DNA of 64,000 nt, from contig JAPDFW010000074.1 of NCBI GenBank assembly GCA_028826165.1, forward strand, positions 310,001 to 374,000, written 5' to 3'. This document shows positions 7,065-64,000 of the stretch, one piece after another. The translations under genes and the position numbers were made by a program. The stretch comes from Anaeramoeba ignava BMAN (taxonomy: Eukaryota; Protista; Anaeramoebae). Position 1 is the first letter of the stretch. Every line of letters starts with the position of its first letter. The notes under the pieces are model-generated. The model made no database searches. It was not told where the DNA came from and saw nothing but the letters and a program-made list of their open reading frames with translations.

Positions 7065-10000
7065 ATGAATCAAAATTCTAATTCAAATCATTTCAATTTT
7101 TCTTTATTTACTTTACCAGAAAGAAAAAAAGGAAATCAAAATCCTAAACAAGAAATGAAAACAAAGAGAAGAATCAAGAAAGAAACACCACAACCATTTA
7201 AAGGAATTGATATTAGAAATTTTATTCCAAATTTTGAAACAAAAAAAAAACAATTAGAATCACTTGATGATGTAATTTTTGAATTCAAAAATCTTCTTAA
7301 CGAGAAGACAGAAGAAGAAAAAGAGGAAGATAAACCGATCCAGGAGATTGATGACTCGATGTTTTTCTTGAGGCCATTTGAAGATTATTATGCTTTAAAT
7401 TTCGGAATTACTTTAAATCCTCAAATCAGGATTTTTTCAGTAAGTTTTTTTTTTCAACAAAACATGAAATGGAAAAAAAAAAACTGGATTAAACAATGTG
7501 ACGAAAATGATTATAAGCAAGATTTTGAAAAAAGGAATGATTGTTGGAGCTAAAATTATCGAAATTGCTCGTGATTATTTTATTGCAATTTTAAATTGTT
7601 TTTTTGGAAGAAAAAGTGATGAAATCATTCTTTGTGATTTGGAGGAACTGGGAATTAAAACTGTTTGTAAAGCTTGGGAAATCAACGATATTTTGTTTGA
7701 GCAATACCAAAAATTTGGTCAATTTAATCATACGTTTGAAAAGCATTCAAAAAAATATTTACAAGAATTTTTAATTAATGATTTTATTAAAGCAATTGTT
7801 ATTGAAGTTTCTGTTGAAGAAAAAAAGGTTTTATTAAGTTTAAGGAATCGGAATTTATTAGTTTCTTTCCAGAAAAATCATTATTTGGGAAGAATAAGTT
7901 CTCGACATGTTAAATTGTTGAAAAATTCTTCTAATGATTTTCTTAATCAAAATTTTCTTGTTCATTTAAATAATGAACCTGGTTTTAAAAATCCTTCTTT
8001 AAAAAGTTGTGATTCTTCTTTTATTCCAAAAATTAAAAATTTATTATTTATTGAAAATTTCGAAGCTGGAAGATATGAGAATTTAAGATTACAACAAAAT
8101 CGGATTTGGGCGACTGAGACGTATTAAATAATTAAATAATTAAAAAATTTATTAAATATTTAAAAAATTTATTAAATATTTAAAAAATTTATTAAATAAT
8201 TAAATAATTGATTAAATATTTAAATAATTTTATTAAATATTTAAATAATTTTATTAAATATTTGATTAAATAATTGATTAAATAATTGATTAAATATTTT
8301 ATTAAATAATTGATTAAATAATTTATTAAATAATTAAATATTTGATTAAATAATTTATTAAATATTTGATTAAATAATTGATTAAATAATTGATTAAATA
8401 ATTGATTAAAATAATTAAAAATAATTGATTAAATAATTAAATAAATTAAATATTTTGATTAAATAATTTGATTAAATAATTTGATTAAATAATTAAATAA
8501 TTGATTAAATAATTTTTAAATATTAAATATTTGATTAAATAATTAATTAAATAATTAAATTTTTTATTAAATAATTGATTAAATAATTGATTAAAATAAT
8601 TAAATAATTTTTGATAAATAATTAAATAATTTAATTAAATAATTTATTAAATAATTAAAAATAAAATTGATTAAAAATTAAATAATTTATTAAATAATTA
8701 AATTAAATAATTGATTAAATAATTTTATTAAATAATTGATTAAATATTGATTAAATAATTCCATTAAATAATTGATTAAATAATTTATTAAATAATTGAT
8801 TAAATATTTGATTAAATAATTTATTTAAATAATTAAATAAATTAAATAATAATTTAATTAAATAATTTTAATTAAAATAATTAATTAAATAATTGATTAA
8901 ATATTTGATTTATTAAATATTTGATTAAATAATTGATTAAATATTTGATTAAATAATTTGATTAAATAATTAAATAAAATTTGATTAAATAATTGATTAA
9001 ATAATTGATTAAATAATTGACAAAAATAAATTGATTAAATATTTGATTAAATAATTTGATTAAATATATTTGATTTAAATAATTGATTAAATATTTGATT
9101 AAATAATTGATTAAATAATTGATTAAATAATTGATTAAATATTTTATTAAATAATTGATTAAATAATTGATTAAATAATTTTATTAAATATTTGATTAAA
9201 TAATTGATTAAATAATTGATTAAATATTTTTATTTTTTCTTCAAATAATTTAAATTAAATAATTGATTAAAAATTTAAATAAATAATTTTGATTAAATAA
9301 TTTGATTGATTAAAAATAATTTGATTAAATAAATTTATTAAATAATTGATTAAAAATTGATTAAATAATTAATTAAATAATTGATTAAAAATAATTGATT
9401 AAATAATTGATTAAATAATTAAATAATTAATTAAATAATTTATTAAATAATTTATTAAATAATTTATTAAAATAAATTAATTAAATAATTGATTAAATAA
9501 TTGATTTAAATATTTGATTAAATAATTGATTAGATATTTGATTAAATAATTGATTAAATATTTGATTAAATAATTGATTAAATATTTGATTAAATAATTT
9601 ATTAAATATTTGATTAAATAATTTATTAAATATTTGATTAAATATTTTATTAAATAATTAAATAATTTATTAAATAATTTATTAAATAATTAATTAAATA
9701 ATTTATTAAATAATTAATTAAATAATTAATTAAATAATTGATTAAATAATTTATTAAATAATTGATTAAATATTTGATTAAATATTTTATTAAATAAATA
9801 ATTAAATAATTAATTAAAAATAATTTATTAAATAATTGAATAATTGATTAAATAATTGATTAAATATTTGATTAAATATTTGATTAAATAATTTATTAAA
9901 TAATTGATTAAATAATTAAATAATTGATTAAATAATTTATTAAATAATTGATTAAATAATTGATTAAATAATTGATTAAATAATTTATTAAATAATTGAT

Positions 10001-10616
10001 TAAATATTTGATTAAATAATTTATTAAATAATTGATTAAATATTTGATTAAATAATTGATTAAATATTTGATTAAATAATTGATTAAATATTTGATTAAA
10101 TAATTGATTAAATATTTGATTAAATAATTGATTAGATAATTTATTAAATATTTGATTAAATAATTAAATATTTTATTAAATAATTTTAAAAGTGTTTCAC
10201 AAGGAGTTGTTTTAGCAAAAAAAGGAGACATTCAATCTGCATTAAATATGTATCAAAAAGCACTTGATGTTGATCCAGAAAACAGTGATGCACTTGTTGC
10301 TCAAGGAGCAGCTTTTGCTAATCAAAATAAAATGCAAATTGCTATTAATTCTTTTAAAAAAGCACTTGAAATTGATCCAGAACATCAAAATGCAAAAAGA
10401 TATCTTGAAATTACTAGAAAAAGACTTGCTTTACAATTAAATTCTTTAATTCCTCAAAATTATTTTGAAAAAAATCATAAAAAAATTAAAAAAGAAAAAT
10501 CAAAAAAAAAATCAAAAAAAAGAAGAACAAATAAAGAAAAGAAAAAGAAAAAGAAAAAGAAAAAAAAATCTCATAAAAAAAATAAATCTAAAAAGAAATT
10601 AGAAGAACAAAAATGA
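7065..10616 (+). CDS. TTC14: TTC14-like S1-domain plus TPR protein, 3 exons (7065-7439, 7522-8120, 10193-10616)
   Basis: S1-like [15 protein letters not shown]...[20 protein letters not shown]. Spliced [44 protein letters not shown]...HQNAKRYL matches the TTC14 TPR region. K-rich tail. Phases consistent. Confidence 0.8.
8121..10192 (+). repeat. 2072-nt intron made of a ~12-mer array (ATTGATTAAATA and variants)
   Basis: GTATTA...TAAAAG boundaries join in-frame exons. The interior is tandem repeat throughout. Confidence 0.9.
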
Positions 10617-10840
10617 ATTTAAATCTAAAATTAAATTTTGAAAAGAAAATGAAAAGAAAATTAAAAAAGAAAAGGAGAAAGAAATTTAAAAAAGAAAAGG
10701 AGAAAGAAAATCAAAAGATCTTTTATTAAAATTAAAAGTCAAAATGTTGTGTTTTTTATTAAAAAATTAAAAATTAAAAATTAAAAATTAAATTTCATTT
10801 TTTTTATTTTTTTCTTTTTTATTTTTTTTACAAAACACGT

Positions 10841-13800
10841 ATGGATAAAATAACTTTTACAAATCAATTTCCAACATCAAAAAATCAAAAAAAAACAAAT
10901 GATTTAATATTTTTTAAACGACTTACACCATCTTGGGTTTATCCAATTCGGAATTTTTTAGAAAAGCGATATATTTTTTCTAAAAAACAAAACAAATTCC
11001 TTAATGTAAACAATTTATAATTAAAATTGAAATTAAAATCAAAATTAAAATTGAAATTAAAATCAAAATCAAAATCAAAATTAATATTAAAATCAAAATT
11101 AAAATTAAAATTAAAATTAAAATTAATATTAATAATTAAAATTAAAATTAAAATTAAAATTAAAATTAAAATTAAAATTAAAATTAAAATTAAAATTAAA
11201 ATTAAAATTAAAATTAAAATTAAAATTAAAATTAAAATTAAAATTAAAATTAAAATTAATATTAAAATTAAAATTAAAATTAAAATCAAAATTAAAATCA
11301 AAATTAAAATTATAATCAAAATAAAGATTATTTTTGAAATTCTTGAAAGAAATTTGACAGATTTTTATGATATAATTGAACCATCAATCCTTCGATTTGA
11401 TAATTTTTCTTGTAAACAATTAGACAGAATTGAAATTAGTTTAAAATCTACAAGAAATAAATTTGAATCTGCTATTGAAAATATGAAACATAGAGCTGAT
11501 GATGCTGTTAATTGGATTAAAGAATCAAAACCAAAACTTCAACCAACTTCAATTTCAGAAATGGTTCAAAAAGTTCTTAAACAAACAGAAGAATTTGCAG
11601 TTGAATTTGAAAAACAAACTGAATTTTTAGATGAAAATTTTCCAACAACAAGAACAACAGAAAATTCAAATGAAAATTTAAATCAAAATATAAATCAAAA
11701 TTCAAAAGATAATTCAAAAGATAATTCAAAAGAAAATATAAATCAAAATTTAAATGATAATTTAAATCAAAATACAAATGATAATTCAAATGATAATTCA
11801 AATGATAATTTAAATGAAAATTTAAATGATAATTTAAATCAAAATTCAAAAGATAATTCAAATGATAATTCAAATGATAATTTAAATCAAAATATAAATC
11901 AAAATTCAAATGAAAATTTAAATCAAAATTTAAATCAAAATTCAAATGATAATTTAAATCAAAATTCAAAAGAAAATATAAATCAAAATTTAAATGATAA
12001 TTTAAATCAAAATTCAAAAGATAATTTAAAAGATAATTCAAATGAAAATTCAAAAGATAATTCAAATCAAAATTCAAAAGATAATTCAAATCAAAATTCA
12101 AATCAAAATTCAAATGATAATTTAAATGATAATTTAAATCAAAATTCAAAAGATAATTTAAAAGATAATTTAAATCAAAATTCAAATGATAATTTAAATG
12201 ATAATTTAAATCAAAATTCAAAAGATAATTTAAAAGATAATTCAAATGAAAATTCAAATGATAATTCAAATGAAAATTCAAATGATAATTCAAATGAAAA
12301 TTCAAAAGATAATTCAAATCAAAATTCAAATCAAAATTTAAAAGATAATTTAAATCAAAATCAAAAATTCATTCAAAAAGATCCTTTTATTTATAATCCT
12401 AAACTTATAATTACTCAACACTTTGAAATTCCAGAAGATATTAAATCTTCAATTTTTCAAAATTTAAATCAAAATTTAAATCAAAACTCAAATCAAAATC
12501 AAAATCAAAAAGAAAAAGTTGTTCGCATTCACATTCACCCTCTCCAACAAACAAAAACTGAATCAGTATCAAAGTTTCCAAGTTTTAATTTCGAATCAAT
12601 GAAAGATGGATTAAATTTTGTTATTGATAAAGGATCATCAACAATTTTTGATATTTCACAAACAAAATTACTTCAATCAATGGCAAAAAGTATTGATTCA
12701 AGTATTATTTACTTAAAATCTTTTCTCACAAAAAATCCTGTAATTTTTATTTTTCAATATTTCTCAAAAATCTTATAAAAATGATTTTTTTTATTTAATT
12801 TAAAAATTAATTACTCAAGAAAGTAACACCTCCTAAACAAGTTCAAGTCAAAAAAAGATCAGAAATTCTTGAAATTGCAAATGATGTGAAAAGTGTTATT
12901 TTTGCATTTTTATTATTTCCATTTTATTTAATCAAATTAAAAATTCAAAAAGTGATTAAATTTCTTCTTCGAAAAAGCAAAAAAATGAGGAAGAAAATCA
13001 AGGCATATTTTATAAAACCAAAAGGAAAAACAGAAAAGGAAAAAGAAAAGGAAAAAGCTAAAATTGAAAATGTTCAAAATCAATATCTTCAAAAATTGAC
13101 AGAAATGAAAGAATCAGCATTGAATGAATTGAAAAAAACAGAAAAATTTATCATTTCATTACTTAATTCTTCTTTTTCTAATTTAAAATCTGTTATTCCA
13201 TCAATTTCTTTCAAGAATAATTCAACAAAAGAAGCACAATCAATAAAAAAAGAATTAGAAAAGGAAATTACAAGTGATGAGGAGACATCACGTCTTTCTC
13301 AAGCTATTGAACAACTTCCAAATCTTCAATTAATTGTCAATTCTTTTTCTTCTTATGCAATTGATATTGCTAATTATTTTAAAAATGATCTAACTGATTC
13401 AGGAAATAAGTTTTTTGAAAAATTATCTCATTCAGAATTTTTTGGTCCAAGAAATATTATTGAATCAATGAATAAAGAAGTTGTTGATTCTATTATTTCT
13501 CTTCAAGAAAATGCTATTTTGAGAATGAGTTCAATTGTTTCTTTTATAACTAATGTTGAAAACCCTACACATAATTTATCAAATTTAAATTTCAATCGAG
13601 ATTTTGATCATTTGGATGATAATTTACAATCAATTTTAAAAGAGAATTTAAATCAAAATTTAAATAAAAATTCAAATGAAAATTCAAATGAAAATTTAAA
13701 AGAAAATTTAAATGAAAATTTAAATCAAAATTCAAATGAAAATACAAATGAAAATTTAAATGAAAATACAAATGAAAATTTAAATGAAAATACAAATGAA

Positions 13801-14100
13801 AATTCAAATGAAAATTCAAATGAAAATTCAAATGAAAATTTAAATCAAAATTCAAATGAAAATACAAATGAAAATTCAAATGAAAATTCAAATGAAAATT
13901 TAAATCAAAATTCAAATGAAAATACAAATGAAAATTCAAATGAAAATTCAAATGAAAATTTAAATCAAAATTCAAATGAAAATATAAATCAAAATTCAAA
14001 TGAAAATTTAAATCAAAATTTAAATGAAAATACAAATGAAAATTCAAATCAAAATTCAAATGAAAATTTAAATCAAAATTCAAATGAAAATTTAAATTAA
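10841..14100 (+). CDS. Asn-rich helical protein with a perilipin PAT-like motif, 3 exons (10841-11005, 11327-12739, 12820-14100)
   Basis: Phase-0 GT-AG introns 11006-11326 and 12740-12819. EPSILRFDNFSCKQLDRIE resembles the PAT motif EPQIxxANxxACKGLDRIE. Two NxNS/NxNL tetrapeptide tracts and a hydrophobic stretch VIFAFLLFPFYLI. Confidence 0.55.
11006..11326 (+). repeat. 321-nt intron filled with (AAAATT)n
   Basis: GTAAAC...ATAAAG. The KIKIKI ORF segment is a by-product of this repeat. Confidence 0.85.
11663..12365 (+). repeat. Coding 12-mer array (NQNL/NDNS/KDNS)
   Basis: In-frame AAT-CAA-AAT-TTA-type units in exon 2. Confidence 0.9.
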
Positions 14101-15365
14101 AATATAAATCAAAATTCAAATGAAAACTTAAATGAAAATTTAAATCAAAATTTAAATCAAAATTTAAATGAAAATTCAAATCAAAATTCAAATCAAAATT
14201 CAAATCAAAATTCAAATCAAAATTCAAATCAAAATTCAAATCAAAATTTAAATCAAAATTCAAATGAAAATACAAATCAAAATTTAAATCAAAATTCAAA
14301 TGAAAATTTAAATCAAAATTCAAATCAAAATTTAAATCAAAATTTAAATGAAAATTCAAATGAAAATTTAAATCAAAATTCAAATGAAAATACAAATCAA
14401 AATTCAAATCAAAATTTAAATCAAAATTCAAATCAAAACTTAAATGAAAATTTAAATCAAAATTTAAATCAAAATTCAAATCAAAATTTCAAATCAAAAT
14501 TCAAATGAAAATTCAAATCAAAATTTAAATGAAAACTTAAATCAAAATTCAAATCAAAATTCAAATGAAAATTCAAATCAAAATTTAAATGAAAATTGAA
14601 ATGAAAATTCAAATCAAAATTTAAATGAAAATTTAAATCAAAATTCAAATCAAAATTCAAATCAAAATTTAAATCAAAATTCAAATGAAAATTCAAATGA
14701 AAATTCAAATCAAAATTTAAATGAAAATTTAAATCAAAATTTAAATCAAAATTTAAATCAAAATTTAAATCAAAATTTAAATCAAAATTCAAATTAAAAT
14801 TCAAATGAAAATCTAAATGAAAATATAAATTAAAATTCAAATCAGAATTGAAATGAAAATTTAAATTAAAATTTAAATCAAAATTCAAATTAAAATTCAA
14901 ATGAAAATCTAAATGAAAATCTAAATGAAAATATAAATTAAAATTCAAATCAGAATTGAAATGAAAATTCAAATCAAAATTTAAATCAAAATTTAAATCA
15001 AAATTTAAATCAAAATTCAAATGAAAATTTAAATCAAAATTCAAATGAAAATTTAAATTAAAATTTAAATCAAAATTTAAATCAAAATTTAAATTAAAAT
15101 TCAAATGAAAATCTAAATGAAAATCTAAATGAAAATATAAATTAAAATTCAAATCAGAATTGAAATGAAAATTCAAATCAAAATTTAAATCAAAATTTAA
15201 ATCAAAATTAAATGATAATTTAAATCAAAATTTAAATCAAAATTCAAATGAAAATTTAAATCAAAATTTAAATCAAAATCAAATCAAAATTTAAATCAAA
15301 ATTTAAATCAAAATTTAAATCAAAATTTAAATGAAAATTCAAATCAAAATTTAAATGAAAATTTA
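13645..15365 (+). repeat. 12-mer array (NENS/NQNL) that starts in the CDS and continues ~1.26 kb past the stop
   Basis: AAT(G/C)AAAATT(C/T)A units. TAA at 14098-14100 is a CAA/GAA>TAA variant of the unit. Confidence 0.9.
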
Positions 15366-15519
15366 ATTGGAAACTTTTTGAATTTTTATTGATTTATTTC
15401 CTTTTTGAAAGAATGGAAAAAGAATTGAAGAATTTTTTTTTTTGGAAGTGAATAAAAAAAAACCAAAAAAAACTTTTGAAAAATCGGAAAAAAAGAAAAT
15501 TTTAAATTTGATTTGAAAA

Positions 15520-17905
15520 TTAGTTAAAATTGGACATCATTTTCTTATAAAGTTCTCTTTTTTCTTGTTCATATTTTGAAACTTTTTGTTTTAAAATTGC
15601 ATATTGTTTTTGAAGATCTTTATTATTTGGTTCAATTTCAAAACCTTTTTTAAAAGTAGTAACTGCATTTTCAAATTCACCTAAATTCATTTCAGCAACT
15701 CCTAATCTATAAAGAGCTCTTAAAGTTTGAGGATTCTTTTCCAAAATCTAAAATGAAAAAATTTTAATTTTAATTTTAATTTTAATTTTAATTTTAATTT
15801 TAATTTTAATTTTAATTTTAATTTTAATTTTAATTTTAATTTTAATTTTGATTTTAATTTTAATTTTAATTTTAATTTTAATTTTAATTTTAATATTAAT
15901 TTAAATTTTGATTTTAATTTTAATTTTAATTTTAATTTTAATTTTAATTTTAATTTTAATTTTAATTTTAATTTTAATTTTAATTTTAATTTTAATTTTA
16001 ATTTTAATTTTAATTTTAATTTTAATTTTAATTTTAATTGAAAACCTTTCTGCATGTTTTCTTAACATCTGCATATTTTTCTAATTTAAGTTGATAAAGA
16101 GCAACATTTAAAGAAAGTTTTAAAATGATTTCTTGTTTTTTTTCTTCATCTTCAGGATCATCTTCAGTTTTCCATTCTTCAAAAAGTTGAAGTCCTTTTT
16201 GTGATTCTTCAATAGCTTCCTGTAATTTATTTTCTCTAAAAAGTGCAATTCCTGTTTCTTTAGCTTTTTCTGCTTTAGTAATTTTAACTTCTAAAGGTTC
16301 TTCTCCTCCAATAATATCTAATAATTCCATTTCAAAAGTAAGTGTTGAATTTGCAGGAATTTTATCAGAAACTGTTTGATTTCCCTTTAAATTTAAATTT
16401 TAATTTTAATTTTAATTTTAATTATAATATTAATTTTAATTTTAATTTTAATTTTAATTATAATATTAATTTTGATTTTGATTTAAATTTTAATTTTAAT
16501 TTTAATTTTAATTTTAATTATAATATTAATTTTAATATTAATTTTAATTTTAATTTTAATTTTAATTTTAATTTTATTTTAATTTTAATTTTTTTTGATA
16601 CAAACATATCCATATTCTGGTTTAATCACAACTTTGCTTTTTTCTCCTATTTTAAAAGTTGGAAGAGAAAGATCCCAACCTTTAATAACTTGTCCAGTTC
16701 CAACAGTTAATTTAAAAGGTTGTCCTCTATTTCTTGAACTATTTAATAGAATAAAAATTAATTTATATTTAAATTTAGATTTTAATTTTGAAATTGATTT
16801 ATATTTTAATTTAGATTTTGATTTTGATTTTAATTTAGATTTTGATTTTAATTTAGATTTTGATTTTGATTTTGATTTATTTTGATTTTGATTTTGATTT
16901 TGATTTTGATTTTGATTTTGATTTTGATTTTGATTTTGATTTTGATTTTGATTTTGATTTTGATTTTGATTTTGATTTTGATTTTGATTTTGATTTTGAT
17001 TTTAATTTAGATTTTAATTTTGATTTTGATTTTGATTTTGATTTTGATTTTGATTTTGATTTTGATTTTGATTTTAAATTTTGATTTTAATTTTGATTTT
17101 GATTTTGATTTTGATTTTGATTTTTTGGATTTGATTTTGATTTTGATTTTGATTTTGATTTTGATTTTGATTTTGATTTTGATTTAAATTTAAATTTTGA
17201 TTTTGATTTTGATTTTGATTTTAATTTTAATTTTAATTTTGAATTTGATTTTGATTTTGATTTTGATTTTGATTTTGATTTTAATTTTAATTTTAATTTT
17301 AATTTTAATTTTGATTTTAATTTTGATTTTGATTTTGAATTTGATTTTGATTTTGATTTTGATTTTGATTTTGATTTTGATTTTGATTTTGATTTTGATT
17401 TTAATTTTGATTTTGATTTTGATTTTGATTTTGATTTTAATTTTGATTTTGATTTTGATTTTGATTTTGATTTTAATTTAGAATTTGATTTTGATTTTGA
17501 TTTTGATTTTGATTTTGATTTTGATTTTGATTTTGATTTTGATTTTGATTTTGATTTTAATTTTAATTTTGATTTTGATTTTGATTTTGATTTTTTGATT
17601 TTGATTTAAATTTTGATTTTAATTTTGATTTTGATTTTGATTTTAATTTTGATTTTAATTTAGAATTTGATTTTGATTTTGATTTTGATTTTGATTTTGA
17701 TTTTGATTTTGATTTTGATTTTGATTTTGATTTAGAAATTGAAATTGATTTTAATGGAAAAATACCTGTCAAAAATTTCACCTTTTTCATTTGTTCCAAC
17801 ATAATGAACTGAAACTTCATCTCCCTTTTTAGGTTTATCACCAGAACCTTCAGTAATAATTGTTTTCACAACACCTCCATCTCCAGAAATATCAATTTCA
17901 CTCAT
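15520..17905 (-). CDS. FKBP-type peptidyl-prolyl isomerase with C-terminal TPR (Hsp90 co-chaperone type), 4 exons (17905-17766, 16738-16606, 16384-16046, 15747-15520), 279 aa
   Basis: DGGVVKTIITEGSGDKPKKGDEVSVHYVG...FDSSRNRGQPF...QVIKGWD...PEYGYG...IPANSTLTFEMELL, followed by TPR (RALYRLGVAEMNLGEFENA). All phases consistent. Confidence 0.92.
16739..17765 (-). repeat. 1027-nt intron of (AAAATC)n with (AAAATT) patches
   Basis: GTATTT...AAATAG. FKBP introns 16385-16605 and 15748-16045 are (AAAATT)n arrays as well. Confidence 0.9.
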
Positions 17906-18032: not shown

Positions 18033-20760
18033 ATGACCCAACCAATTAGAAGAGTTAGTACATTTCAAGGAGAAGAAGATAACGTACTCAAATCAACAAC
18101 AACAGATGAAGAAAAATTTGAAATTCTTTCTGAAAAAGAAAATCAACAAAAAAATTCTTCAACAAAACCAGCAAAATATCAATTAAACATAACAAAGAAA
18201 CAATTACAAAATCATAAGGAGCAATCACTGCTCTTCAAAATACTGACTATCCCATATAAACATCCAGCTAGATTAATGGGATTTATTTGGATAATAAATA
18301 TATTCTATTTTGAAGTGATAATTTTTAATCAAAAAATAGACACTTGTAAGTGGCCTGAATTAACAGAAGAAACAGGAAAAAAAGGCAATGAGAAAGAAAA
18401 AAAGAAAATTAGCGAAAAGGATTTATTGAAAATGTTGGTTGTTTCTGATGTACAAGTTACTGATTCAACAAGTTATTATTTTGCAGAAAAACGAGGTTTT
18501 TTTTTATATTTTATTGAATTTTGGTCAGATATTTTTATGAGAAAAGTTTTTAAGAAAATTCAAAATATTCATCCAAATCCTGATATTTTAGTTACTTTGG
18601 GTGATTTATTAGATGGTGGAAGAAAATTGAATGATTTCAAGTATTAAAATCAAAAATCATTTATAAAATTAAAATTCATTTATAAAATTAAAATTCATTT
18701 ATAAAATTAAAATTAAAATTAAAATTAAAATTCATTTATAAAATTAAAATTAAAATTAAAATTAAAATTCATTTATAAAATTAAAATTAATTTATAAAAT
18801 TAATATTAATTTATAAAATTATAATTCATTTATAAAATTAAAATTATTTATAAAATTAAAATTAATTTATAAAATTAAAATTAATTTATAAAATTAAAAA
18901 TTAATTTATAAAATTAAAATTATTTATAAAATTAAAATTCATTTATAAAATTATAATTCATTTATAAAATTAAAATTAATTTATAAAATTAAAATTCATT
19001 TATAAAATTAAAATTCATTTATAAAATTAAAATTCATTTATAAAATTAAAATTCATTTATAAAATTAAAATTCATTTATAAATTATAATTCATTTATAAA
19101 TTATAATTAATTTATAAATTCAAAATCATTTATAAAATTAAAATTAATTTATAAAATTAAAATTCATTTATAAAATTATAATTCATTTATAAAATTAAAA
19201 TTAATTTATAAAATTAAAATTATTTATAAAATTATAATTAATTTATAAAATTATAATTCATTTATAAAATCAAAAATCATTTATAAAATTAAAAATTTAT
19301 AAAATTAAAAATCATTTATAAAATTATAATTATTTATAAAATTAAAATTAATTTATAAATTCAAAATCATTTATAAAATTAAAATTAATTTATAAAATTA
19401 AAATTCATTTATAAAATTATAATTCATTTATAAAATTAAAATTATTTATAAAATTAAAATTCATTTATAAAATTAAAATTATTTATAAAATTAAAATTCA
19501 TTTATAAAATTAAATTCATTTATAAAATTAAATTCATTTATAAAATTATAATTAAAAGTTTTGATTTGGAAATGAAAAGATATAATTGGATTTTTGAACT
19601 TCAAAAAGATATTCCTTTCTTAAATATTTCAGGAAATCATGATATTGGTTATGCAATGTAAAAATATTAAAAATATTAAAAATTAAAAATTAAAAAATTA
19701 AAAATTAAAAATTCAAAAATATTCAAAAATTAAAAATTTCTTTTTTTTAAAAAAAAGTGAAAATAATCCAGAAAATAAAGAAAGATATAAAAGAACATTT
19801 GGCCCACTTAATTTCCAAAAAGAATTAAAAAACTTCACATTTATTGGAATAGATTCATCAAATATTGAAACAGAAGTTGCAAATGAAGAATATCATTTAG
19901 AATTTAGTGAATTTTTGGAAAATATTTCAAAAGAAGTTATTGAAAACCCAAAACAACCAAGAGTATTATTCACTCATTTCCCATTATTTCGTTTCTCTTC
20001 AGATTGTGGAGAATTTGATTTCAAACCTTATCAAAATTTCCATAAATATCAAGGGAAATTAACATATCAACATTATGTTCTTGAAAAAAGTAGCGAAAAA
20101 ATTCTTGATCAAATTCAACCATCATTTATATTTTCAGGACATCTTCATATTCCATGTTATTACTCACATAGGAATAAACACCCAGAATTGATTGTGGGGA
20201 CTTTCTCGTGGTTACAAGGTTATCTACATCCAAGTTATACACTTGTCTCACTTTTTTATGATAAATCAAATATTGATTCACAACCTCAAATTAAATATTC
20301 AGTTTGTTTTCTCCCAAATCAACTTCATGTCTACTTTTGGTATATTGTTCTCTTTATTATTACTATGATTGTGTTCTTTGTTGTTCCCCCTTTTTTCGCT
20401 ATTTGTAATTTTGTTTTTCATTTTAATTCTTCTCAAAAAATTTCTGGTCAAATTTTTTCTTCAAAATATTTTCCTGATGATGAAATCAATCATTTTAGTC
20501 AAGATGATAACGAGAATTCAAATTCAAATTCAAATTCTAATTCAAATTCAAATTCAAATTCTAATTCAAATTCTAATTCTAATTCTAATTCTAATTCTAA
20601 TTCTAATTCTAATTCTAATGGAAATCGAATTTTTTCTTTTTGGAAAAGATTTTTTTCTATTCTTCTTTATGAATCAACAAAAAATATAAAACCATTTATC
20701 AAAATGTTAGCAACAGCAATTCCAGTTTATCTTTACATTTTATATTATGAATTAAGATGA
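18033..20760 (+). CDS. Cdc1/MPPE1 (PGAP5)-like membrane metallophosphoesterase, 3 exons (18033-18640, 19559-19657, 19758-20760)
   Basis: Motifs VSDVQ, LGDLLDGG, SGNHDIG (exon 2), FTHFPL and SGHLH. N- and C-terminal TM segments, CFLPNQ motif, NS tract. Confidence 0.85.
18641..19558 (+). repeat. 918-nt intron of a ~19-20-mer array (TTTATAAAATTAAAATTCA)
   Basis: GTATTA...TAAAAG, phase-2 join restores the frame into the GNHD exon. Confidence 0.9.
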
Positions 20761-23900: not shown

Positions 23901-23981
23901 AATTTATTATTAAAATTATTATTAAATTTATTATTAAAATTATTATTAAATTTATTATTAAATTTGTTATTTACAACTCAT
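20956..23981 (-). CDS. MYND zinc-finger protein with helical N-terminus, 4 exons (23981-23975, 22756-22254, 22183-21937, 21815-20956)
   Basis: MYND: CAYCGKK...LCKGC...YCSKECQLEHWSLHRAIC. A 7-nt first coding exon ATGAGTT joins in phase to give MSYKRKLKKKQRRKKKKP (NLS-like). Extra CHFC...HVC motif. Confidence 0.75.
22757..23974 (-). repeat. 1218-nt intron of a 12-mer array (AATAATAATTTT)
   Basis: GTAAAT...AATAG, phase 1 consistent. Confidence 0.8.
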
Positions 23982-28331: not shown

Positions 28332-28544
28332 TTAAATAATAAAACAAAACTAAGTTAATTAAAATTAATAAAGAAAAAAAATAAATTAAAAAAAATAAAC
28401 AAAAATTTTTTTCTTTTAAAATAAAAATAAAAATAAAAAAATTAAAATAAAAAAAACAGAAGAAGTAAAAATCTTTTTCATGAGAAGCAAAGCTAAATCT
28501 TTTTTAATTTTTTTTTTTAAAAGAAAAAATTTTAAATTTTATTT

Positions 28545-29200
28545 AATTTAAAATAAATTTATTCAATTTCCTTAATTAATTTAATTTTAAAATTTATTTT
28601 AAAATTATTCCACTTTTTTTAATTAATTTAATTTCAAAATTTATTCCACTTTCTTTAATTAATTTATTTTTAAAATTTATTCAAAATTTATTCCACTTTC
28701 TTTAATTAATTTAATTTCAAAATTTATTCCACTTTTTTTAATTAATTTAATTTAAAATTTATTCCACTTTTTTTAATTAATTTAATTTCAAAATTTATTT
28801 TAAAATTTATTCCATTTTTTTTAATTAATTTAATTTTAAATTTTATTCCATTTTTAATTAATTTAATTTCAAAATTAATTTAATTTTCCTTAATTAATTT
28901 AATTTCAAAATTTATTTAAAATTTATTTCAATTTCTTTAATTAATTTAATTTCAAAATTTATTTTAAATTTATTTAATTAATTTAATTTCAAAATTTATT
29001 TTAAAATTTATTCCATTTTCTTTAATTAATTTAATTTTAAAATTAATTTAAAATTTATTCCACTTTTTTTAATTAATTTAATTTTAAAATTTATTTTAAA
29101 TTTATTTCAATTTTTTTAATTAATTTAATTTCAAAATTTAATTTTAAAATTTATTCACTTTTCTTTAATTAATTTAATTTCAAAATTAATTTTAAAATTT
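28545..29200. repeat. Intergenic degenerate minisatellite, ~35-50-bp unit TTAATTAATTTAATTTCAAAATTTATTCCACTTT
   Basis: Repeated TTAATTAATTTAATTT(C/T)AAAATTTATT and TTCCACTTT blocks. Confidence 0.85.
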
Positions 29201-29244
29201 AAATATTCTAAATAGTAATATTTTTTTATTCATAAAAGATTGTT

Positions 29245-32290: not shown

Positions 32291-32427
32291 AATTTTAAAA
32301 AGAAAGGAGAAAATTATCTTTTTTTTTTTTCCCATTTTTTCAAGATAACTAAATTTCTTTTTCAATTTAGGGAAAATTTTTTTTTTTTGATTTATTTTTT
32401 CTTTCTTTCTTTTTAATAAATTTATAA

Positions 32428-49900: not shown

Positions 49901-52900
49901 TTGTTTGCAACTTTGGAGTCAAATATAATTGGATTCTGGATTGATGAATAAAAGGGAATGAAATATCAACAGAAAAATAAGGTTTCCAAAAACAAATGGG
50001 TTGAATTGTTTCAAAATCGGCTTGTATTTCTAATTGCTTTTGAGGTGATTCTTTGCTTTCTATTTGAGTAATTGAGTTAATCATGTTCATATCCCACAAA
50101 ATAAATTCTGCAATCCCAACAAAATGTCTTTTTTGTATAATTTTGTTTTGAATCCATGGATTTTCTGTTAAAATTGTTGAGAGAAATATCAAACTTAACC
50201 TTCGGATTTGAGACCCAAATTTATATGCCTCTTGAATGGTATTTTGTTGATTAGAAATGACAAAAATATTTGTTGATAAATTCCCTCGATTTTCAAAATA
50301 AAAAAAATTAACTCCAAAAATATCATAATTTTGTTTGAATTGATCATGACTATCATTTTTTTGAAGAATTTGTTGAATTAATTCACTTTCAAATCCAAAT
50401 GGTTTAAAAGTGTCAAAATTTGTTGGAACATTGATTAGTTCAAGTAAAAAATATGCACAATTTTTAAGTTCGATTCGATGCATAACTCCAAATTTGGATA
50501 AAATTTCAAATAAATTTATACATAATATTTTCATTTCAAATTGTCTTTGTGAAGTAACATATTCTTTATCAAGTTGTGAATTAGAAGCAAAAATTTCTTT
50601 TATATTTTTTTTAAAAAAGATAAATTGTTAAGATAAATTGTTGATAAAATTTGAAATGGAAAATTTTTCCAAACCAATTAATTTTGTAGTTAATCTTATA
50701 TTTTTTAATTTTGTTAATTGTTGTTTTGCTTGTAAAAATTCTTTTGAATCTTTTTTTGCAGAAAGGACTTTTTGAGGGCAAAATGATTGAATAATTTCAC
50801 AAGTTCTAGAAAGAAGGAATTGAAGTAAAACAACATTTGCCATTATAAATTTATTTTCAAAACCAGAACGAAGCTAAAAAATTTTTAGAAATTAAAATTA
50901 TTTGAAATTAAATTATTTGGAAATTAAATTATTTTGGAATTAAATTATTTGAAATTAAATTATTTTGAAATTAAATTATTTGAAATTAAATTATTTTTAG
51001 AAATTAAATTATTTTGAAATTAAATTATTTGAAATTAAATTATTTGAAATTAAATTATTTGAAATTAAAATTATTTGAAATTAAATTATTTGAAATTAAA
51101 TTATTTTGAAATTAAATTATTTGAAATTAAATTATTTGAAATTAAATTATTTGGAAATTAAATTATTTGGAATTAAATTATTTGAAATTAAATTATTTAG
51201 AATTAAATTATTTGGAATTTAAATTATTTAAAATTAAATTATTTGGAATTAAATTATTTGTATTTAAATTATTTGTATTTAAATTATTTGTATTTAAATT
51301 ATTTGGGAATTAAATTATTTGAATTTAAATTATTTAAAATTAAATTATTTGGAATTAAATTATTTGAAATTAAATTATTTGAAATTTAAATTATTTGGAA
51401 TTAAATTATTTGAAATTAAATTATTTGGAAATTAAATTATTTGAAATTAAATTATTTGAAATTAAATTATTTGGAATTAAATTATTTGGAAATTAAATTA
51501 TTTGAAATTAAATTATTTGAAATTAAATTATTTGAAATTAAATTATTTGAAATTAAATTATTTGAAATTAAATTATTTGAAATTATTTTAAATTATTTGG
51601 AAATTAAATTATTTGGAAATTAAATTATTTGAAATTAAATTATTTGGAAATTAAATTATTTGAAATTAAATTATTTGAAATTAAATTATTTGAAATTAAA
51701 TTATTTGAAATTAAATTATTTGAAATTAAATTATTTGAAATTAAATTATTTGAAATTAATTTAAATTATTTTGGAAATTAAATTATTTGAAATTAAATTA
51801 TTTGAAATTAAATTATTTGAAATTAAATTATTTGGAAATTAAATTATTTGGAAATTAAATTATTTGAAATTAAATTATTTGAAATTAAATTATTTGAAAT
51901 TAAATTATTTGAAATTAAATTATTTGAAATTAAATTATTTGGAAATTAAATTATTTGAAATTAAATTATTTGAAATTAAATTATTTGAAATTAAATTATT
52001 TGAAATTAAATTTGAAATTAAATTATTTGAAATTAAATTATTTGAAATTAAATTATTTGTATTTAAATTATTTGAAATTAAATTATTTGAAATTAAATTA
52101 TTTGAAATTAAATTATTTGGAATTAAATTATTGAAATTTAAATTATTTTGAAATTAAATTATTTGAAATTAAATTATTTGTATTTAAATTATTTGAAATT
52201 AAATTATTTGGAAATTAAATTATTTGGAATTAAATTATTTGAAATTAAATTATTTGTATTTAAATTATTTGAAATTAAATTATTTGGAATTAAATTATTT
52301 GAAATTAAATTATTTGGAAATTAAATTATTTGGAAATTAAATTATTTGGAAATTAAATTATTTGAATTTAAATTTTTTGGAATTAAATTGTTTACTTGTG
52401 TTTTAATTAATTGAAGAAGTGATTTAATATCAGTTGTTAAATCTAATAATAAATCAAAAAGTCCAAAATTGAAAAGAGTTTGTCTATTAAATTTTGATTC
52501 AACAAGAATTCGAAAAATTTCAAAAGATGAAGCAATTTTAAATTTTGAACGAGAAGAAGATAAAAAATTTAAAATTGATTCATTTGAAGAACTTATAGAA
52601 ATATAATCTAAATAAAGGAATAAAAAAAGAATAAAAAAAAAGGAAAATTATTTTGAATAAAAAAAATTAGTTTTTGATTTCTTACTTTTAATTAAATTTT
52701 TAAATTCTAAAAATATATTAATTATCATAACAATAAATTCTTGAGAATGTCCACAATCATTTGCTACTGCTTCTTTAAGTTCTTTTTGTGAAAATTCAAA
52801 TAAAAATTTTCCTCTTTTTTGTTTTGCATTTTCACATTTAATTTTGACTTTTTCAGGATTCCAAGAACGATAACTTTGAAGAAATACTTCTGAAAAAGAA

Positions 52901-53298: not shown

Positions 53299-56200
53299 TT
53301 ACACTTTATTAAAAACTGCTAAAGGAAAATATTTAGTTTGAGAATTCCATTGAGGTCTAATTGTTATTAAAGAAACTCCAGTCCAATCAATACTATCAAT
53401 ATTAACAACAAATCCTTTTTTATTATCAAGTGTTTTTGCTAATAATTTTGAAATTTGTAAAGCTCTTCTTTGATATTTTGTTTCTTTTTTACTTGATAAA
53501 TTTCTTTTTTTATCTGTATAAACTGTTAATAAAGAAAAACTTTCTCCTGAAATTGGTAATTCATTTTGATCTAATTTTAATGCAAGTGCAATAGTTCTTA
53601 AAGGAGTAGCAACAACAAATTCCAAAGTAACATGTTTTGTTATCTAAAATAAATTAAGAATAAATAAATAAAATAAATTTTGTTCCACTTTTTTTATTTT
53701 AATTTTAATTTTAATTTTACTTTTTATCTTTTCTTTCTTTTTGGATTCTTTTTCTTTTCATCTTTCTCTTTTATTTCTTTTTATCTTTTTGATGTCTAAC
53801 CCAATAATCAAGACTAACTCTAGGAGGTTCTGAAACATGTTCATTTTGTTTTTCAAAATCTTTTTGTTCACCAATTTTCATTGATTTAAGAAATGGAATT
53901 GTTTTTTGAATTATTAATGAATCAGAATCTTCTCCTTTTATTGTTAAAAATGCTTCATTAATATTTAATAATGTTGTATATTTTCCTCCATATATATATT
54001 TATCCATTGATGAAACAATAAATTCTATTTCTTGATTTGTAAATTTTTCTTGTTCATCAAATAAATTTTTCCAATTACTATGAATAAATAAAGTTCTATA
54101 TTGTGAATCTAATGATGCAATATGAAGTGCAATATCAATTTTCTTGCCTTTTTTAATTTTGATTTTATTAATAATTTTATTAATAATTTTATAAATAATT
54201 TTATAAATAATTTTATATTTAATTTTATTAATAATTTTATATTTAATTTTATAAATAATTTTATATATAATTTTATAAATAATTTTATAAATAATTTTAT
54301 AAATAATTTTATAAATAATTTCATAAATAATTTTATAAATAATTTTATAAATAATTTTATAAATAATTTTATAAATAATTTTATAAATAATTTTTATAAA
54401 TAATTTTATAAATAATTTTATAAATAATTTTATAAATAATTTTATAGTAAATTTATAAATATTTTTATATATAATTTTATAAATAATTTTATATATAATT
54501 TTATAAATAATTTTATATATAATTTTTATAATTAATTTTATAATTAATTTTATATTTAATTTTATATTTAATTTTATAAATAATTTTATATTTAATTTTA
54601 TATTTAATTTTATATTTAATTTTATAAATAATTTTTATATAATTTTATAAATAATTTTATATATAATTTTATAAATAATTTTATAAATAATTTTATATTT
54701 AATTTTATATTTAAGTTTATAAATAATTTTATAAATAATTTTATAAATAAATTTATAAATAATTTTATAAATAATTTAATAAATAATTTTTATAATTAAT
54801 TTTTAAGAAATAAATAATTTTATAATTAATTTTATAAATAATTTTATATATAATTTTATAATTAATTTTATAATTAATTTTATATATAATTTTATATATA
54901 ATTTTATAAATAATTTTATAAATAATTTTATATATAATTTAATAAATAATTTTATAAATAATTTTATAAATAATTTTATTGTTAATAATTTTTTCCATTT
55001 AATTTTGAATATTTAATTTTATATTTAATTTTATAAATAATTTAATATATAATTTTATAAATAATTTTATATATAATTTTATAAATAATTTTATATATAA
55101 TTTTATATTTAATTTTATAAATAATTTTATAAATAATTTTAAATCTACCTATTGGTAAAATATAAAATTTTATTAATTCAAGTGGTTTTTGAGTTTTTGA
55201 TAAAATATCAACATATGAACGTAAAATTTCTGTTATAAAAACATCAGATCCAAGAACAACAATTTTAAAAGGAGTTCTATTTGTTTTAATTTTTTGTTGA
55301 TATTTTACAACTGTTGAAAATGTTTGTTGAATATCTAAAAAATTTTGAATCCAAATTAATTTTCCTTGAAGAGATGATAAATTAATCCATGGTAATAATT
55401 TTTGAGTTCTTCTTTTTCCTGCTTTTAAAAGGAATATATTTTCCACTGTTTTTGATGAATTAAATAAATTTTGTAATGTTCTTGTTACACTTTCAAAAGA
55501 AACTAAAAAATTGATTATTAATTTATAAATAAAAAAAGAACCAACAAAATAATAAATTAATAAATCCAACTTGTTTTCAATTTCAAATTTAAATTCAATA
55601 AAATCAATTTACTTAAAGGATAAGAATTTGCTGAATTTGATTTTTTTAAACTAGATTTAAGTGATTTATTTTCTTCATTCATAAATTTTATAGGTGTTTC
55701 TGATTGTGATTCTTGTTCTATTTTTTCAGTTGATTCATTTCCTTGTTTTTCTTGTTCAAGATTTTTTGTCAAATTTATTATTTCTTTATCACTTGAATCT
55801 TCTTCTTTTATCATTTGATTTAAATCATTATTTGATTGATTTTGATTTTGATTTTGATTTTGAATTGAAATAATTTCATTTTCTTGTTTTCCTCCTTTCT
55901 TTTTAATTCCTTTTCTAAATCTTGCTCCAAATTTAAGTTTATTTCTTAATTTTCCAAATCTTTTCTTTTTTTGTTTTGGTTCAATTTGTGTTAATTCTGG
56001 ACCTTCAATAAGATATTGTAAATCATCTGAATCAGAAGAACTAAATAATAATTTATTAATTTAATAATTTATTAATTTAATAATATTTAAAATATTTAAA
56101 ATATTTTTTTTACTGTTTATCTTTTTCTTCAAAATCTTCTCCATCAATATCATTAACTTCTTCATTTTGAATATTTAATAATGCTCCAATTTTTAAAGGT

Positions 56201-58034
56201 ATTGTTACTACACGAATATTAATTTTAGCTCTTAAATTATTTGTATTTGGTTCTATTAATTTTAGTGATGAATCGAAAGTCATTTGTAACTAATTTTAAT
56301 AAATTTTTAAAAAATAAATTTAATCAATTTTTGTTTTTAAAATAAAATTTAATCAATTTCTGTTTTAAAATAAATTTAATCAATTTCTGTTTTTAAAATA
56401 AATTTAATAAATTTCTGTTTTTAAAATAATTTTAATAAATTTCTGTTTTAAAAATAATTTTGATAAATTTCTGTTTTTAAAATAAATTTGATAAATTTCT
56501 GTTTTTAAAATAATTTTGATAAGTTTCTGTTTTTAAAAATAATTTTGATAATTTTCTATTTTAAAATAATTTTGATAAATTTCTATTTTTAAAATAGTTT
56601 TGATAAATTTCTGTTTTAAAAATAATTTTGATAAATTTCTGGTTTTGAAATAATTTTGATAAATTTCTGTTTTTAAAATAATTTTAATAAATTTCTGTTT
56701 TTAAAATAATTTTGATAATTTTCTGTTTTTAAATAAATTTGATAAATTTCTGTTTTTAAAATAATTTTAATAAATTTCTGTTTTAAAAATAATTTTGATA
56801 AATTTCTGTTTTTAAAATAAATTTAATAAATTTCTGTTTTTAAAATAATTTTGATAAATTTCTGTTTTTAAAATAAATTTTGATAAATTTCTGGTTTTAA
56901 AATAAATTTGATAAGTTTCTGTTTTTAAAATAATTTTGATAAATTTCTGGTTTTAAAATAAATTTAATAATTTTCTGTTTTTAAAATAAATTTGATAAAT
57001 TTCTATTTTAAAATAAATTTGATAAATTTCTATTTTAAAATAAATTTGATAAATTTCTGGTTTTAAAATAATTTTGATAAATTTCTATTTTTGAAATAAA
57101 TTTAATCAAATTTCTGTTTTTAAAATAATTTTGATAATTTTTTGTTTTTAAAATAAATTTGATAAATTTCTGTTTTTAAAATAAATTTAATAAATTTCTG
57201 TTTTTAAATAAATTTGATAAGTTTTTGTTTTTAAAATAAATTTGATAAATTTCTGTTTTTAAAATAAATTTGATAAATTTCTATTTTAAAATAAATTTGA
57301 TAATTACAACATCTGCAAGATTTATTTTACCAATACCAATTGTTGATTTTTTCTTTCCTCTTTTTTTTGTTCTTTGAAGATGAATATTTAATATATTATC
57401 TGAATACTAAAAAATATTAAAAAATTAAATTAATTAATTAATAAATTAATAAATTAATTAATAAATAATTTTACTTTTAAATTGTGTAAATAACGAAAAG
57501 AAAAAACATAAGCAAGTTGATAAATAAGTTGAGAATCATTTTCTGTAAAAGGTAAAATTAAATTTGAAGATTCTAATTTATTAGAAATATTTTTCTTATC
57601 ATTTTTTGAAGGAGTTATAGTTATTGGAGTTGATTTTCTTTGTTGTTTCATTGTTTGAATTGTTGTTTTTGTATTTTTATTTTGTTTTTGATTTTTTGAT
57701 TCATTTTCTTCTTCTTGTTTAATTGGAATATGAATTGCTCCAGTTGAAAGTTTACTCTTTCCTGAATCAATACTTAATGATAATTCTAAAGGTGAAGGAA
57801 AATCAAATTCTTCATTTAAAAAAATTTCTATTTTTATTTTTATTTTTTTTAATTTAAAATTTTAATTTAAAATTTTTTTCTTATTTTTATTTATTATTAT
57901 TATTAACCAAGTAATGTTATTTTTGCAATACAAGTTCTTGGAACACAATGAGCTGGAATATCTTTAATATCTCCTTTTTTTATTCCTGAAAATAATTTTG
58001 TTTCAATTCCAACTTTTTGTTCTTCAGAATTCAT
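53299..58034 (-). CDS. PACS: Phosphofurin acidic cluster sorting protein (PACS), 8 exons (58034-57908, 57827-57475, 57406-57308, 56289-56114, 56040-55613, 55502-55149, 54147-53801, 53643-53299)
   Basis: CVPRTC, FSFRYLHNLK-YSDNILNIHLQR...GKINLADVLQ (FBR), KIVVLGSDVFITEILRSYV, SLDYW, and ISKLLAK...IDSIDWTGV...QWNSQTKYFPL match PACS-1. The last donor site is uncertain. Confidence 0.85.
54148..55148 (-). repeat. 1001-nt intron of a 12-mer array (ATAAAATTATTT)
   Basis: GTAGAT...AAAAAAG, phase 1 consistent. Confidence 0.9.
56290..57307 (-). repeat. 1018-nt intron of a ~29-mer array (TTATCAAAATTATTTTAAAAACAGAAAT)
   Basis: GTAATT...ATTAG, phase 0 join ADV|LQM matches PACS. Confidence 0.9.
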
Positions 58035-62458: not shown

Positions 62459-62568
62459 TTTTTTAAATTTAAAAAAAAAGAAAAAAATAAAAATTTTAAA
62501 AATTCTTTTATATTGTTTGATTTTTTTTTTTTATTTAATTTTTTTTAATTTTCTAAATTAATTTTTTT

Positions 62569-64000
62569 CTATTTTAAATTTATTTTCTTTTTCTCTATAA
62601 ATTCTTGATATTTTTTTAATGCTTCATCTTTAGCAAAAGCATAATTAAAACTTTTTTTTGAAATTTCTTTTAATTCTTTTATTGAAAAATTTAAATAAAA
62701 ACTAACATTTGCAAATTCTTTAGATAAAGAAGTTAAAAAAACACCTAAAACATTAAAAATTAAAATTAAAATTAAAATTAAAATTAAAATAAACATTAAA
62801 ATCGGATAAAAATTATAATTAAAATTAAAATTAAAATTAAATTCGGATAAAAAATTAAAATTAAAATTAAATTTAAAAATTAAAATTAAAATTAAAATTA
62901 AAATTAAAATTAAAATTAAAATTAAAATTAAAATTAAAATTATTAAAATTAAAATTAAAATTAAAATTAAAATTAAAATTAAAATTAAAATTAAAATTAA
63001 AATTAAAATTAAAATTAAAATTAAAATTAAAATTAAAATTAAAATTAAAATTAAAATTAAAATTAAAATTAAAATTAAAATTAAAATTAAAATTAAAATT
63101 AAAATTAAAATTAAAAATCGGATAAAAAATTATAATTAAAAATTTGGATAAAAAATTTATAAACCTTGATCATCTGTACAAAATGAAATTGGATGATTTC
63201 TTTTATAAAATTCTTTTGCATGATGTTTTTCAAAACTTGGAACAGATTCAGTTTTTACATTTGAAGTTAAACAAATTTCAACAGGAATTTTTGAATCAAA
63301 TAATAAATTACGAATTTCATCATTTAAATAATTAGCATGACCTAATCTTTGAGGATTAAATTTTAACATTTGAATACTTTCTTCATAATCAATTTTTTCT
63401 GCAAAATGTAAAGTAATAAAAAGACCTAAATCTTTTGCTTTTTTTAAAACAGGAACAAAATCAATAAATTTATTTTTAAAAGGATTTCCAGCAAAATCAA
63501 TTCCAATAATAACATCTTTTTGATTAATTTGTGATATAATTTCAATAGTTTCATTTGCAATTTCTTTTGAATATGCTCTATTTATACTTAATATTAATTT
63601 AACAACAATTCCATTATTTAAATTTTTAGTTGTTTCTTTAATTGTTGATATAATTGTTTCAATATGTTCTTTTTTAGTTGCTTTTTCTTGATTTTCTGAT
63701 GATTTCTTTAAAAAACGTGGAGTTGTTCTAAGCTCAAGATAAATACAATTATCATAATAAAAATCTTCAATTACTTCTTTTGTAATTCTTTTTATTTTTT
63801 CTAAATCATCAATTAATAAATATATTAAATCAAATAATTTAAAACAATCACTAAGTGTTCTTTCACTTCCTTTTTCAAGAAGTTTTGTATCTTCTGGATT
63901 TATTTTGTTTTTTAAATTTGATTTTTCTATAAATTCTTTAATTGTTGATTCTCTAATTGATCCATTAAGATGTGCATGAAGTTCTGCTTTTGGAATTTTT
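62569..64000 (-). CDS. ADAL: Adenosine deaminase-like protein (ADAL/MAPDA, N6-methyl-AMP deaminase type); start beyond window, 2 exons (>64000-63165, 62744-62569)
   Basis: KIPKAELHAHLNGSIR, YLELRTTPR, GIDFAGNP, LHFAE, RLGHA, EICLTSN, CTDDQG|VFLTSLSKE. Confidence 0.9.
62745..63164 (-). repeat. 420-nt intron of (TTTTAA)n
   Basis: GTTTAT...TTTTAG, phase 1 join restores DDQG-VF. Confidence 0.9.

Follow-up and report, generated by a model that had tools for sequence, protein, structure and literature searches.

AT-rich tandem arrays fill the long introns and long spacers of a 64-kb window of the Anaeramoeba ignava genome

Results

Eleven long introns in the window

The window analysed in this study is a 64,000-nt stretch of the genome of Anaeramoeba ignava BMAN (positions 310,001 to 374,000 of contig JAPDFW010000074.1, designated C75:310001-374000), taken from an assembly of 42.8 Mb in 147 contigs. 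Its G+C content is about 20%, and the published genome has 80.65% A+T (PMC11550330). The window genes include those for a BEACH-domain protein, EMC1, an ankyrin-BTB protein, a BTB-BACK-TLDc protein, an FKBP-TPR isomerase, a PACS-1 homologue, and an adenosine-deaminase-like protein. The published annotation was built with RNA-seq mapping (PMC11550330). It contains 32,108 introns with a mean length of 300 nt, a mode of 76 nt, a longest intron of 4,168 nt, and 8.14% GC (PMC11550330 Supplementary Table S3A and Note 1). The words tandem, microsatellite, and low complexity are not used for introns in PMC11550330 or its supplements. A preliminary description of the window had proposed that it holds 11 long introns consisting of tandem repeats nearly from GT to AG. 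We analysed these intervals (Table 1) using gene models and exons that we built ourselves. Pfam and protein searches were done exon by exon, not on joined spliced proteins, and tandem repeats were called with Tandem Repeats Finder (TRF).

Read on the coding strand, all 11 long intervals are bounded by GT and AG. When the flanks were joined, exactly one frame was open for at least 33 codons on each side of the splice in every case. An independent junction search was performed, in which frame-compatible GT..AG pairs between neighbouring coding segments were ranked by lowest GC. It recovered identical coordinates for nine of the 11 long introns. The same search gave 14 short introns of 54-157 nt in the window, which is the range described before for the short class. 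The long introns measure 221-2,072 nt, sum to 10,036 nt, and make up about one third of the introns in the window. An initial GT..AG heuristic was dropped because it scored no better than decoy dinucleotides, and flank-strand statistics and the frame-aware search were used instead.

Outside support of three kinds was obtained, namely Pfam continuity (16739-17765 and 54148-55148), public models (54148-55148 and 62745-63164), and a spliced contig (18641-19558). Positions 4-26 of the Pfam FKBP_C profile were matched by one exon next to 16739-17765 and positions 28-71 by the other, and the Pacs-1 profile was split in the same way around 54148-55148 (positions 9-117 and 122-216). The public model P0121 crosses 54148-55148 uninterrupted, reading '...KFYILPIGKKIDIALH...', and P0001 crosses 62745-63164 uninterrupted, reading '...FCTDDQGVFLTSLSKEF...'. 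A 278-residue exon of the window corresponds to P0001 at 100% identity, and an A. ignava paralogue was also matched. The orthologous deaminase protein of A. flamelloides is colinear across 62745-63164. Another public model, P0122, was not located on any contig.

An RNA-type contig of run X3 (881 nt) ends at 18640, and its loose end is identical to window positions 19559-19588. Since this contig joins 18640 to 19559, the 918-nt intron 18641-19558 was removed exactly. Splicing at the boundaries given in the preliminary description was thus confirmed here, in the only intron with transcript evidence. Contigs of the DNA runs X1 and X4 continue past 18640 into the array, as genomic DNA does. The interval 22757-23974 is the least secure because its upstream exon is of low complexity and it is without outside support. 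These results indicate that all 11 intervals are ordinary spliceosomal GT-AG introns, with 22757-23974 the weakest of them and only probable.

Two further intron candidates were rejected. A possible 393-nt non-array intron at 52924-53316 is a spacer, since the match to the Pacs-1 profile already finishes at the upstream gene's stop codon. At 18282-18338, a short intron had been supposed, but the X3 contig runs colinear across it and the candidate was discarded. The start of P0121, a model of 380 aa, is near 55.6 kb, and the PACS-1 orthologue of A. flamelloides is a protein of 1,036 residues that includes a long N-terminal region. Exons further upstream, in 55617-58034 on the minus strand, including the 56290-57307 intron, may belong to the same PACS-1 gene, in which case P0121 would be truncated.

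Table 1. Array-filled introns and other tandem arrays in the window (positions count from the first letter of the window)
Feature	Position	Strand	Content and evidence
Intron, 2,072 nt, TPR gene	8121..10192	+	95% array of 12-mer ATTAAATAATTG; downstream exon with TPR repeats
Intron, 321 nt	11006..11326	+	AAAATT array
Intron, 298 nt, FKBP-TPR gene	15748..16045	-	AAAATT (sense strand); flanking exons with TPR
Intron, 221 nt, FKBP-TPR gene	16385..16605	-	AAAATT (sense strand); FKBP motif continues across splice
Intron, 1,027 nt, FKBP-TPR gene	16739..17765	-	CAAAAT array (sense strand); FKBP_C continuity
Intron, 918 nt	18641..19558	+	Array of 19-mer TAAAATTAAAATTCATTTA, genome-dispersed satellite family; spliced X3 contig
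Probable intron, 1,218 nt, near gene 5' end	22757..23974	-	12-mer TTATTAAAATTA array, unit at many other loci
Intron, 1,522 nt, N-terminal part of BEACH-domain gene	50874..52395	-	15-mer array, genome-unique unit
Intron, 1,001 nt, PACS-1 homologue	54148..55148	-	12-mer ATTTTATAAATA array; Pacs-1 continuity and P0121
Intron, 1,018 nt	56290..57307	-	28-mer array, elsewhere only in C103 duplicate; 32 sense-strand AG
Intron, 420 nt, adenosine-deaminase-like gene	62745..63164	-	AATTTT (sense strand) array; P0001 reads across
144-bp-period array, divergent intergenic spacer	2289..3127	.	TRF
12-mer array, N-rich coding tail then convergent-gene spacer	13621..15366	+	TRF
47-bp-period array, spacer between two minus-strand genes	28537..29201	.	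TRF
Array with nested periods of 22, 146, and 271 bp, divergent intergenic spacer	31535..32303	.	TRF

Arrays fill the long introns and are absent from the short ones

Arrays of at least 100 bp cover 97.2% of the bases of the long introns (86-100% per intron) and 0% of the 14 short introns. Between a splice site and the nearest array edge lie 0-78 nt at one end of the intron and 0-48 nt at the other. TRF gave 24-167 head-to-tail copies per long-intron array, with 80-91% matches. In simulated non-coding DNA of the same composition (second-order Markov), the longest array was at most 205 bp. TRF agreed with the units and periods described before (the 15-mer, the 12-mers, and the 6-mers), and the unit given as about 29 nt is a 28-mer. 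Unit likeness was lowest in the first and last tenth of nearly every intron and highest inside. Such degenerate edges around a homogeneous interior are the usual mark of internally homogenising arrays.

Some repeat units are private and others recur across the genome

The preliminary description had stated that no unit longer than 6 nt is shared between introns. We found that this holds for the 15-mer, the 28-mer, and the 12-mer ATTAAATAATTG, whereas the 19-mer, TTATTAAAATTA, and ATTTTATAAATA recur elsewhere. In whole-genome pattern searches, the 15-mer of 50874-52395 (3 units, ≤2 mismatches) and ATTAAATAATTG of 8121-10192 (4 units, ≤1 mismatch) were found in their own arrays only, and the 28-mer of 56290-57307 (1.5 units, ≤2 mismatches) was found only in its own array and in the C103 duplicate. 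One-base variants of ATTAAATAATTG occur at other loci. A BLAST search with 601 bp of the ATTAAATAATTG array gave more than 300 places at 75-82% identity, but this is about the identity of any two AT-only 12-mer arrays at best rotation. The strict pattern search showed ATTAAATAATTG to be private, and a shared ATTAAATAATTG family was therefore rejected.

The 19-mer of 18641-19558 gave 1,115 matches across the genome when searched as 2 units with ≤2 mismatches, and 88 matches on at least 35 contigs when searched as 4 units with ≤1 mismatch. The 12-mer TTATTAAAATTA of 22757-23974 gave 2,036 matches at dozens of loci (4 units, ≤1 mismatch), and the exact ATTTTATAAATA unit of 54148-55148 was present in two further arrays of the C1 sample described below. 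Introns of unrelated genes carry the 19-mer, which is found in either orientation relative to the gene. With arrays masked, no flank similarity was found among the 19-mer loci except in one duplicated pair. The 19-mer is composed of two AAAATT units plus CATTTAT, has relatives of 25, 31, and 56 nt, and lies inside AAAATT arrays at some loci. The recurrence of pure A/T 12-mers can be convergence, because there are only a few hundred rotation/strand classes. These results show that the units form a narrow AT-rich vocabulary with periods mostly of 6 and 12, in which some units are local inventions and others, such as the 19-mer and the hexamers, are multi-locus families.

Arrays also occupy spacers and a coding tail

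The preliminary description had noted that most intergenic spacers are short and had placed the growth in introns. The spacers are indeed mostly short, but the growth is not specific to introns. The four window spacers of 0.9-1.4 kb are 61-89% array. Among the 11 short spacers, 10 were without an array and one was 29% array. The array at 13621-15366 begins as an in-frame, N-rich (N-x)n coding tail, passes a stop at 14098, and runs on for 1.3 kb beyond it. This 1.7-kb 12-mer array has 0% indels and a frame shift near 14500. In the window, every non-coding interval longer than about 200-400 bp, whether intron or not, is an array.

We next give the extent of arrays in a 264-kb sample consisting of the window and 20 evenly spaced 10-kb pieces of contig C1 (L009-L028). 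The sample contained 100 arrays of at least 200 bp, which made up 28.6% of its bases, in agreement with the proposal that the phenomenon is genome-wide. Non-coding DNA was 35% of the sample, and TRF covered 75.6% of the non-coding bases. Among 71 low-GC short-period arrays, period 6 was found in 21 and period 12 in 17. AAAATT occurred at 12 loci and AAAATC at 10, together 22 of the 71. Periods were multiples of six in 43 of the 71, which exceeds a uniform spread of periods, and many 12-mers may be diverged dimers of hexamers. For 57 arrays the nearest coding segments on the two sides shared a strand, and for 10 they lay on opposite strands. Assuming random gene orientation, this corresponds to roughly 70% intronic and 30% intergenic arrays. 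The published intron lengths, with their low mode and long tail to 4,168 nt, fit a bimodal distribution of two classes.

Arrays with periods of 143-162 bp, about nucleosome size, have 2-9% G+C and lie mostly in divergent or other intergenic spacers, not in introns. They were found at 2289-3127 and 31535-32303 of the window and at L011 3799-5482, L013 3952-5414, L018 8385-9445, and L026 854-1654 and 2132-3147. Their pairwise identity was only 70-74%, and they were not treated as one family, for none can be claimed at this level. The array at 28537-29201 sits just downstream of a BTB-BACK-TLDc gene, and in its unit AG and GT overlap on one G. Tandem repeats were also present in coding sequence, with a 135-bp (45-residue) repeat of 86% identity at 618-1502 and 102-bp ankyrin repeats of 96% identity at 36522-37398. 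These coding repeats point to recent in-frame expansion in exons as well.

Near-identical copies differ in array length

The region C103:5.4-14.5 kb is an inverted copy of window positions 56300-64000, and C64:227-230 kb (L041) and C79:252-255 kb (L046) are inverted copies of each other. In both pairs, unique sequence is 97-100% identical. At the deaminase locus, the exon flanks of C75 and C103 had 0-3 mismatches in about 1.5 kb, whereas the intron array was 361 bp in C75 and 504 bp in C103 (60.7 and 82.7 copies, 143 bp apart). A second array of this pair measured 207 bp in C75 and 249 bp in C103. The flanks of C64 and C79 were 98.7-100% identical, and the 19-mer array between them was 554 and 972 bp long (29.4 and 50.4 copies, 418 bp apart). 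The array difference within the pairs amounts to 20-24 units. The C103 copy of the deaminase gene has frame-breaking indels, and P0002 is a truncated model. These results demonstrate that the arrays change length in place, far faster than base substitution, unless the assembler mis-sized the arrays.

Marks of transposition were also sought at the 11 long introns. The longest string common to both exon flanks was 2-6 nt, so that no target-site duplication was seen, and only AT palindromes of 5-9 nt, rather than terminal inverted repeats, were present at the intron ends. In the absence of target duplications, terminal inverted repeats, and common flanks, the arrays are not transposons. The earlier view that these introns lack terminal repeats and target duplications, are not inserted mobile elements, and grew in place agrees with both the flanks and the length differences between copies.

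The transcribed strand is poor in G and in splice-site dinucleotides

Base composition was compared between the strands in sample arrays with same-strand coding flanks. C exceeded G on the sense strand in 38 arrays, and the reverse was true in 12 (p = 3e-4). The excess persisted when arrays of the same locus and unit were collapsed (31 versus 11) and when only tight flanks were used (17 versus 3). Short introns were without this sense C bias (G 35, C 44). In the arrays, 71% of G/C lay within a TGA or TCA context, versus 37% elsewhere. Only 48 sense AG/GT were counted in about 23 kb of 33 arrays (the 11 window introns and 22 sample arrays), and 32 of these were in the 28-mer array, which offers about 32 potential cryptic acceptors. 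The sense C-over-G excess, together with the near-absence of GT and AG, is a new observation of this study.

The orthologous positions in A. flamelloides lack introns

The preliminary description had suggested that a short ancestral intron amplifies a piece of itself. This was not supported by the sister species A. flamelloides, in which neither of the two orthologous positions compared has an intron, short or long. Its deaminase gene is without introns. The introns of its PACS-1 gene measure about 97 nt, 3.6 kb, and 3.0 kb, and none is at the position of A. ignava 54148-55148. TRF covered 4-5% of the A. flamelloides loci (35 kb), with no array longer than 110 bp despite the 3.0- and 3.6-kb introns. 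On this small sample, the array habit looks specific to the A. ignava lineage.

Discussion

In this study, we found that the long introns of the window are arrays almost from end to end. The reading that we favour, to which we give a probability of about three in four, is that they are ordinary spliceosomal introns in which AT-rich micro- and minisatellite arrays have come to occupy the body of the intron. These arrays would change in place and be tolerated for their near-absence of sense GT and AG. They would grow, shrink, and homogenise where they are located, probably through replication slippage and unequal or out-of-register recombination. All non-coding DNA and some coding tails would be subject to the process, which would not be specific to introns. 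Inside an intron, an array would be tolerated because the transcribed strand has nearly no GT or AG, with G rare and mostly in a TGA context, and the true splice sites at the ends would then remain the only usable ones. On the simplest reading, units that create cryptic splice sites are barred from expanding inside genes, and we infer selection from this.

Several points weigh against this reading in its plain form. Perfect matches of 76 nt to the 19-mer array occur on at least 35 contigs, at mutually unrelated loci, for which a purely local origin is insufficient. Such matches of a C-bearing unit are not convergence, and therefore the unit must either have spread to some extent between loci or have been seeded repeatedly from the hexamer family. 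From the dispersal of the 19-mer it likewise follows that transfer between loci, or seeding from existing arrays, must act in addition to change in place. The TGA/TCA context bias is equal on both strands, so that selection on splicing alone is insufficient and another factor, mutational or structural, also acts. The array at 56290-57307 carries a sense CAG in nearly every 28-mer unit, with 32 AG, yet it is still an intron. The near-identical pairs may be recent segmental duplications, uncollapsed alleles, or assembly duplicates. Finally, 0.6% of the genome, drawn from two contigs only, was sampled, and strands as well as coding or non-coding status were assigned with our own coding-potential map, trained on long open reading frames, rather than with an annotation.

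The dispersal of some units raises a possible, though tentative, alternative, in which arrays are seeded or overwritten from other loci, by break repair from a non-allelic array or by a reintegrating extrachromosomal satellite, and slippage only alters their length. This may act alongside growth and shrinkage in place. It would account for the 1,115 two-unit and 88 four-unit (≤1 mismatch) matches of the 19-mer on at least 35 contigs, for its unrelated flanks and both orientations, for its construction from AAAATT and its location inside AAAATT arrays, and for the share of AAAATT and AAAATC among the short-period sample arrays (22 of 71). However, for three of the six longer units only a single locus was found, and with no more than a few hundred rotation/strand classes a pure A/T 12-mer should recur exactly by chance. 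A broader proposal is a genome-wide satellite turnover, in which thousands of introns and spacers exchange arrays when repair copies from another locus, while selection inside genes keeps only units free of sense GT and AG. It may include introns born from expanding arrays that are spliced out, and we consider it rather unlikely. Mobile introns or transposon-borne arrays of an introner-like or MITE-like kind, inserted in genes, were already disfavoured and are extremely improbable. Some units do occur at many loci, and the introns are absent from A. flamelloides at the two tested positions, but target duplications and terminal inverted repeats are missing and the 19-mer loci share nothing outside the array. 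Array lengths and units also vary continuously, and identical arrays are present in spacers and coding tails.

The length differences between near-identical copies bear on two other explanations. These copies differ mainly by indels and array length, which noisy reads can produce, and the arrays or their lengths could in that case be long-read assembly artefacts of low-complexity DNA. We regard this as very unlikely, since short-read contigs of X1 and X4 pass from unique flanks into the arrays, the array is exactly what an RNA-type contig leaves out, and the arrays contain structured internal variants and higher-order periods. The RNA-seq-based annotation also lists introns as long as 4,168 nt, and its mean intron length is four times the mode (PMC11550330). 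Conversely, the arrays might be kept for a function, such as setting intron length, excluding nucleosomes, or tuning expression. Strand-biased bases, the reach of the arrays to within a few bases of both splice sites, and the arrays of 143-162-bp period, about nucleosome size, in promoter-side spacers would suit such a role. A function is nevertheless unlikely, as near-identical copies differ by 20-24 units, the units are not conserved, and arrays are lacking at the loci of the sister species A. flamelloides. Taken together, these comparisons leave spliceosomal introns with arrays that change in place as the favoured explanation, with some transfer between loci, or seeding from arrays already present, acting in addition.

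In compact protist genomes, the usual view is that introns are kept short and lengthen when complex or mobile DNA inserts. Dictyostelium discoideum and Plasmodium falciparum resemble A. ignava in extreme A+T content, abundant non-coding simple repeats, and N-rich coding tracts. In those species, repeats are reported to be about one tenth of the genome and introns are short, whereas arrays of at least 200 bp make up 28.6% of the A. ignava sample and tandem repeats 75.6% of its non-coding bases. Introner elements of Micromonas, some fungi, and dinoflagellates are lineage-specific introns in many genes that share full-length sequence and leave target duplications. The A. ignava introns have at most a repeat unit in common, without target duplications or shared full-length sequence. 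Length-variable intronic arrays are also known from human intronic repeat expansions.

The closest likeness in structure is with the fertility genes kl-3 and kl-5 of the Drosophila Y chromosome, which likewise have spliceosomal introns of mostly simple satellite that are transcribed and then removed (PMC6508621). Those introns reach hundreds of kb to Mb in a few Y-linked heterochromatic genes with a special expression programme (PMC6508621), whereas those of A. ignava span 0.2-2 kb, with a published maximum of 4.2 kb, and belong to ordinary housekeeping genes in a compact genome of 43 Mb. Intronic variable-number tandem repeats (VNTRs) or minisatellites of animals, such as those of C. elegans, likewise vary in length through slippage or unequal exchange and are without transposon marks (PMC4039745). 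In these, however, the array is a small part of a complex intron, and in A. ignava it is 86-100% of the intron.

A. ignava appears to hold a second class of introns, in which the whole body is a fast-changing tandem array, and the same process fills its spacers. Such array introns would account for a published mean (300 nt) that is four times the mode (76 nt), and for an intron G+C content of only 8%. Repeat masking or short-read mapping in A. ignava would erase or mis-size a large share of the introns. The genome would also provide a natural system for studying how the spliceosome finds its sites across kilobases of near-pure A/T repeat, how the avoidance of cryptic sites shapes repeat expansion, and how fast intron length drifts.

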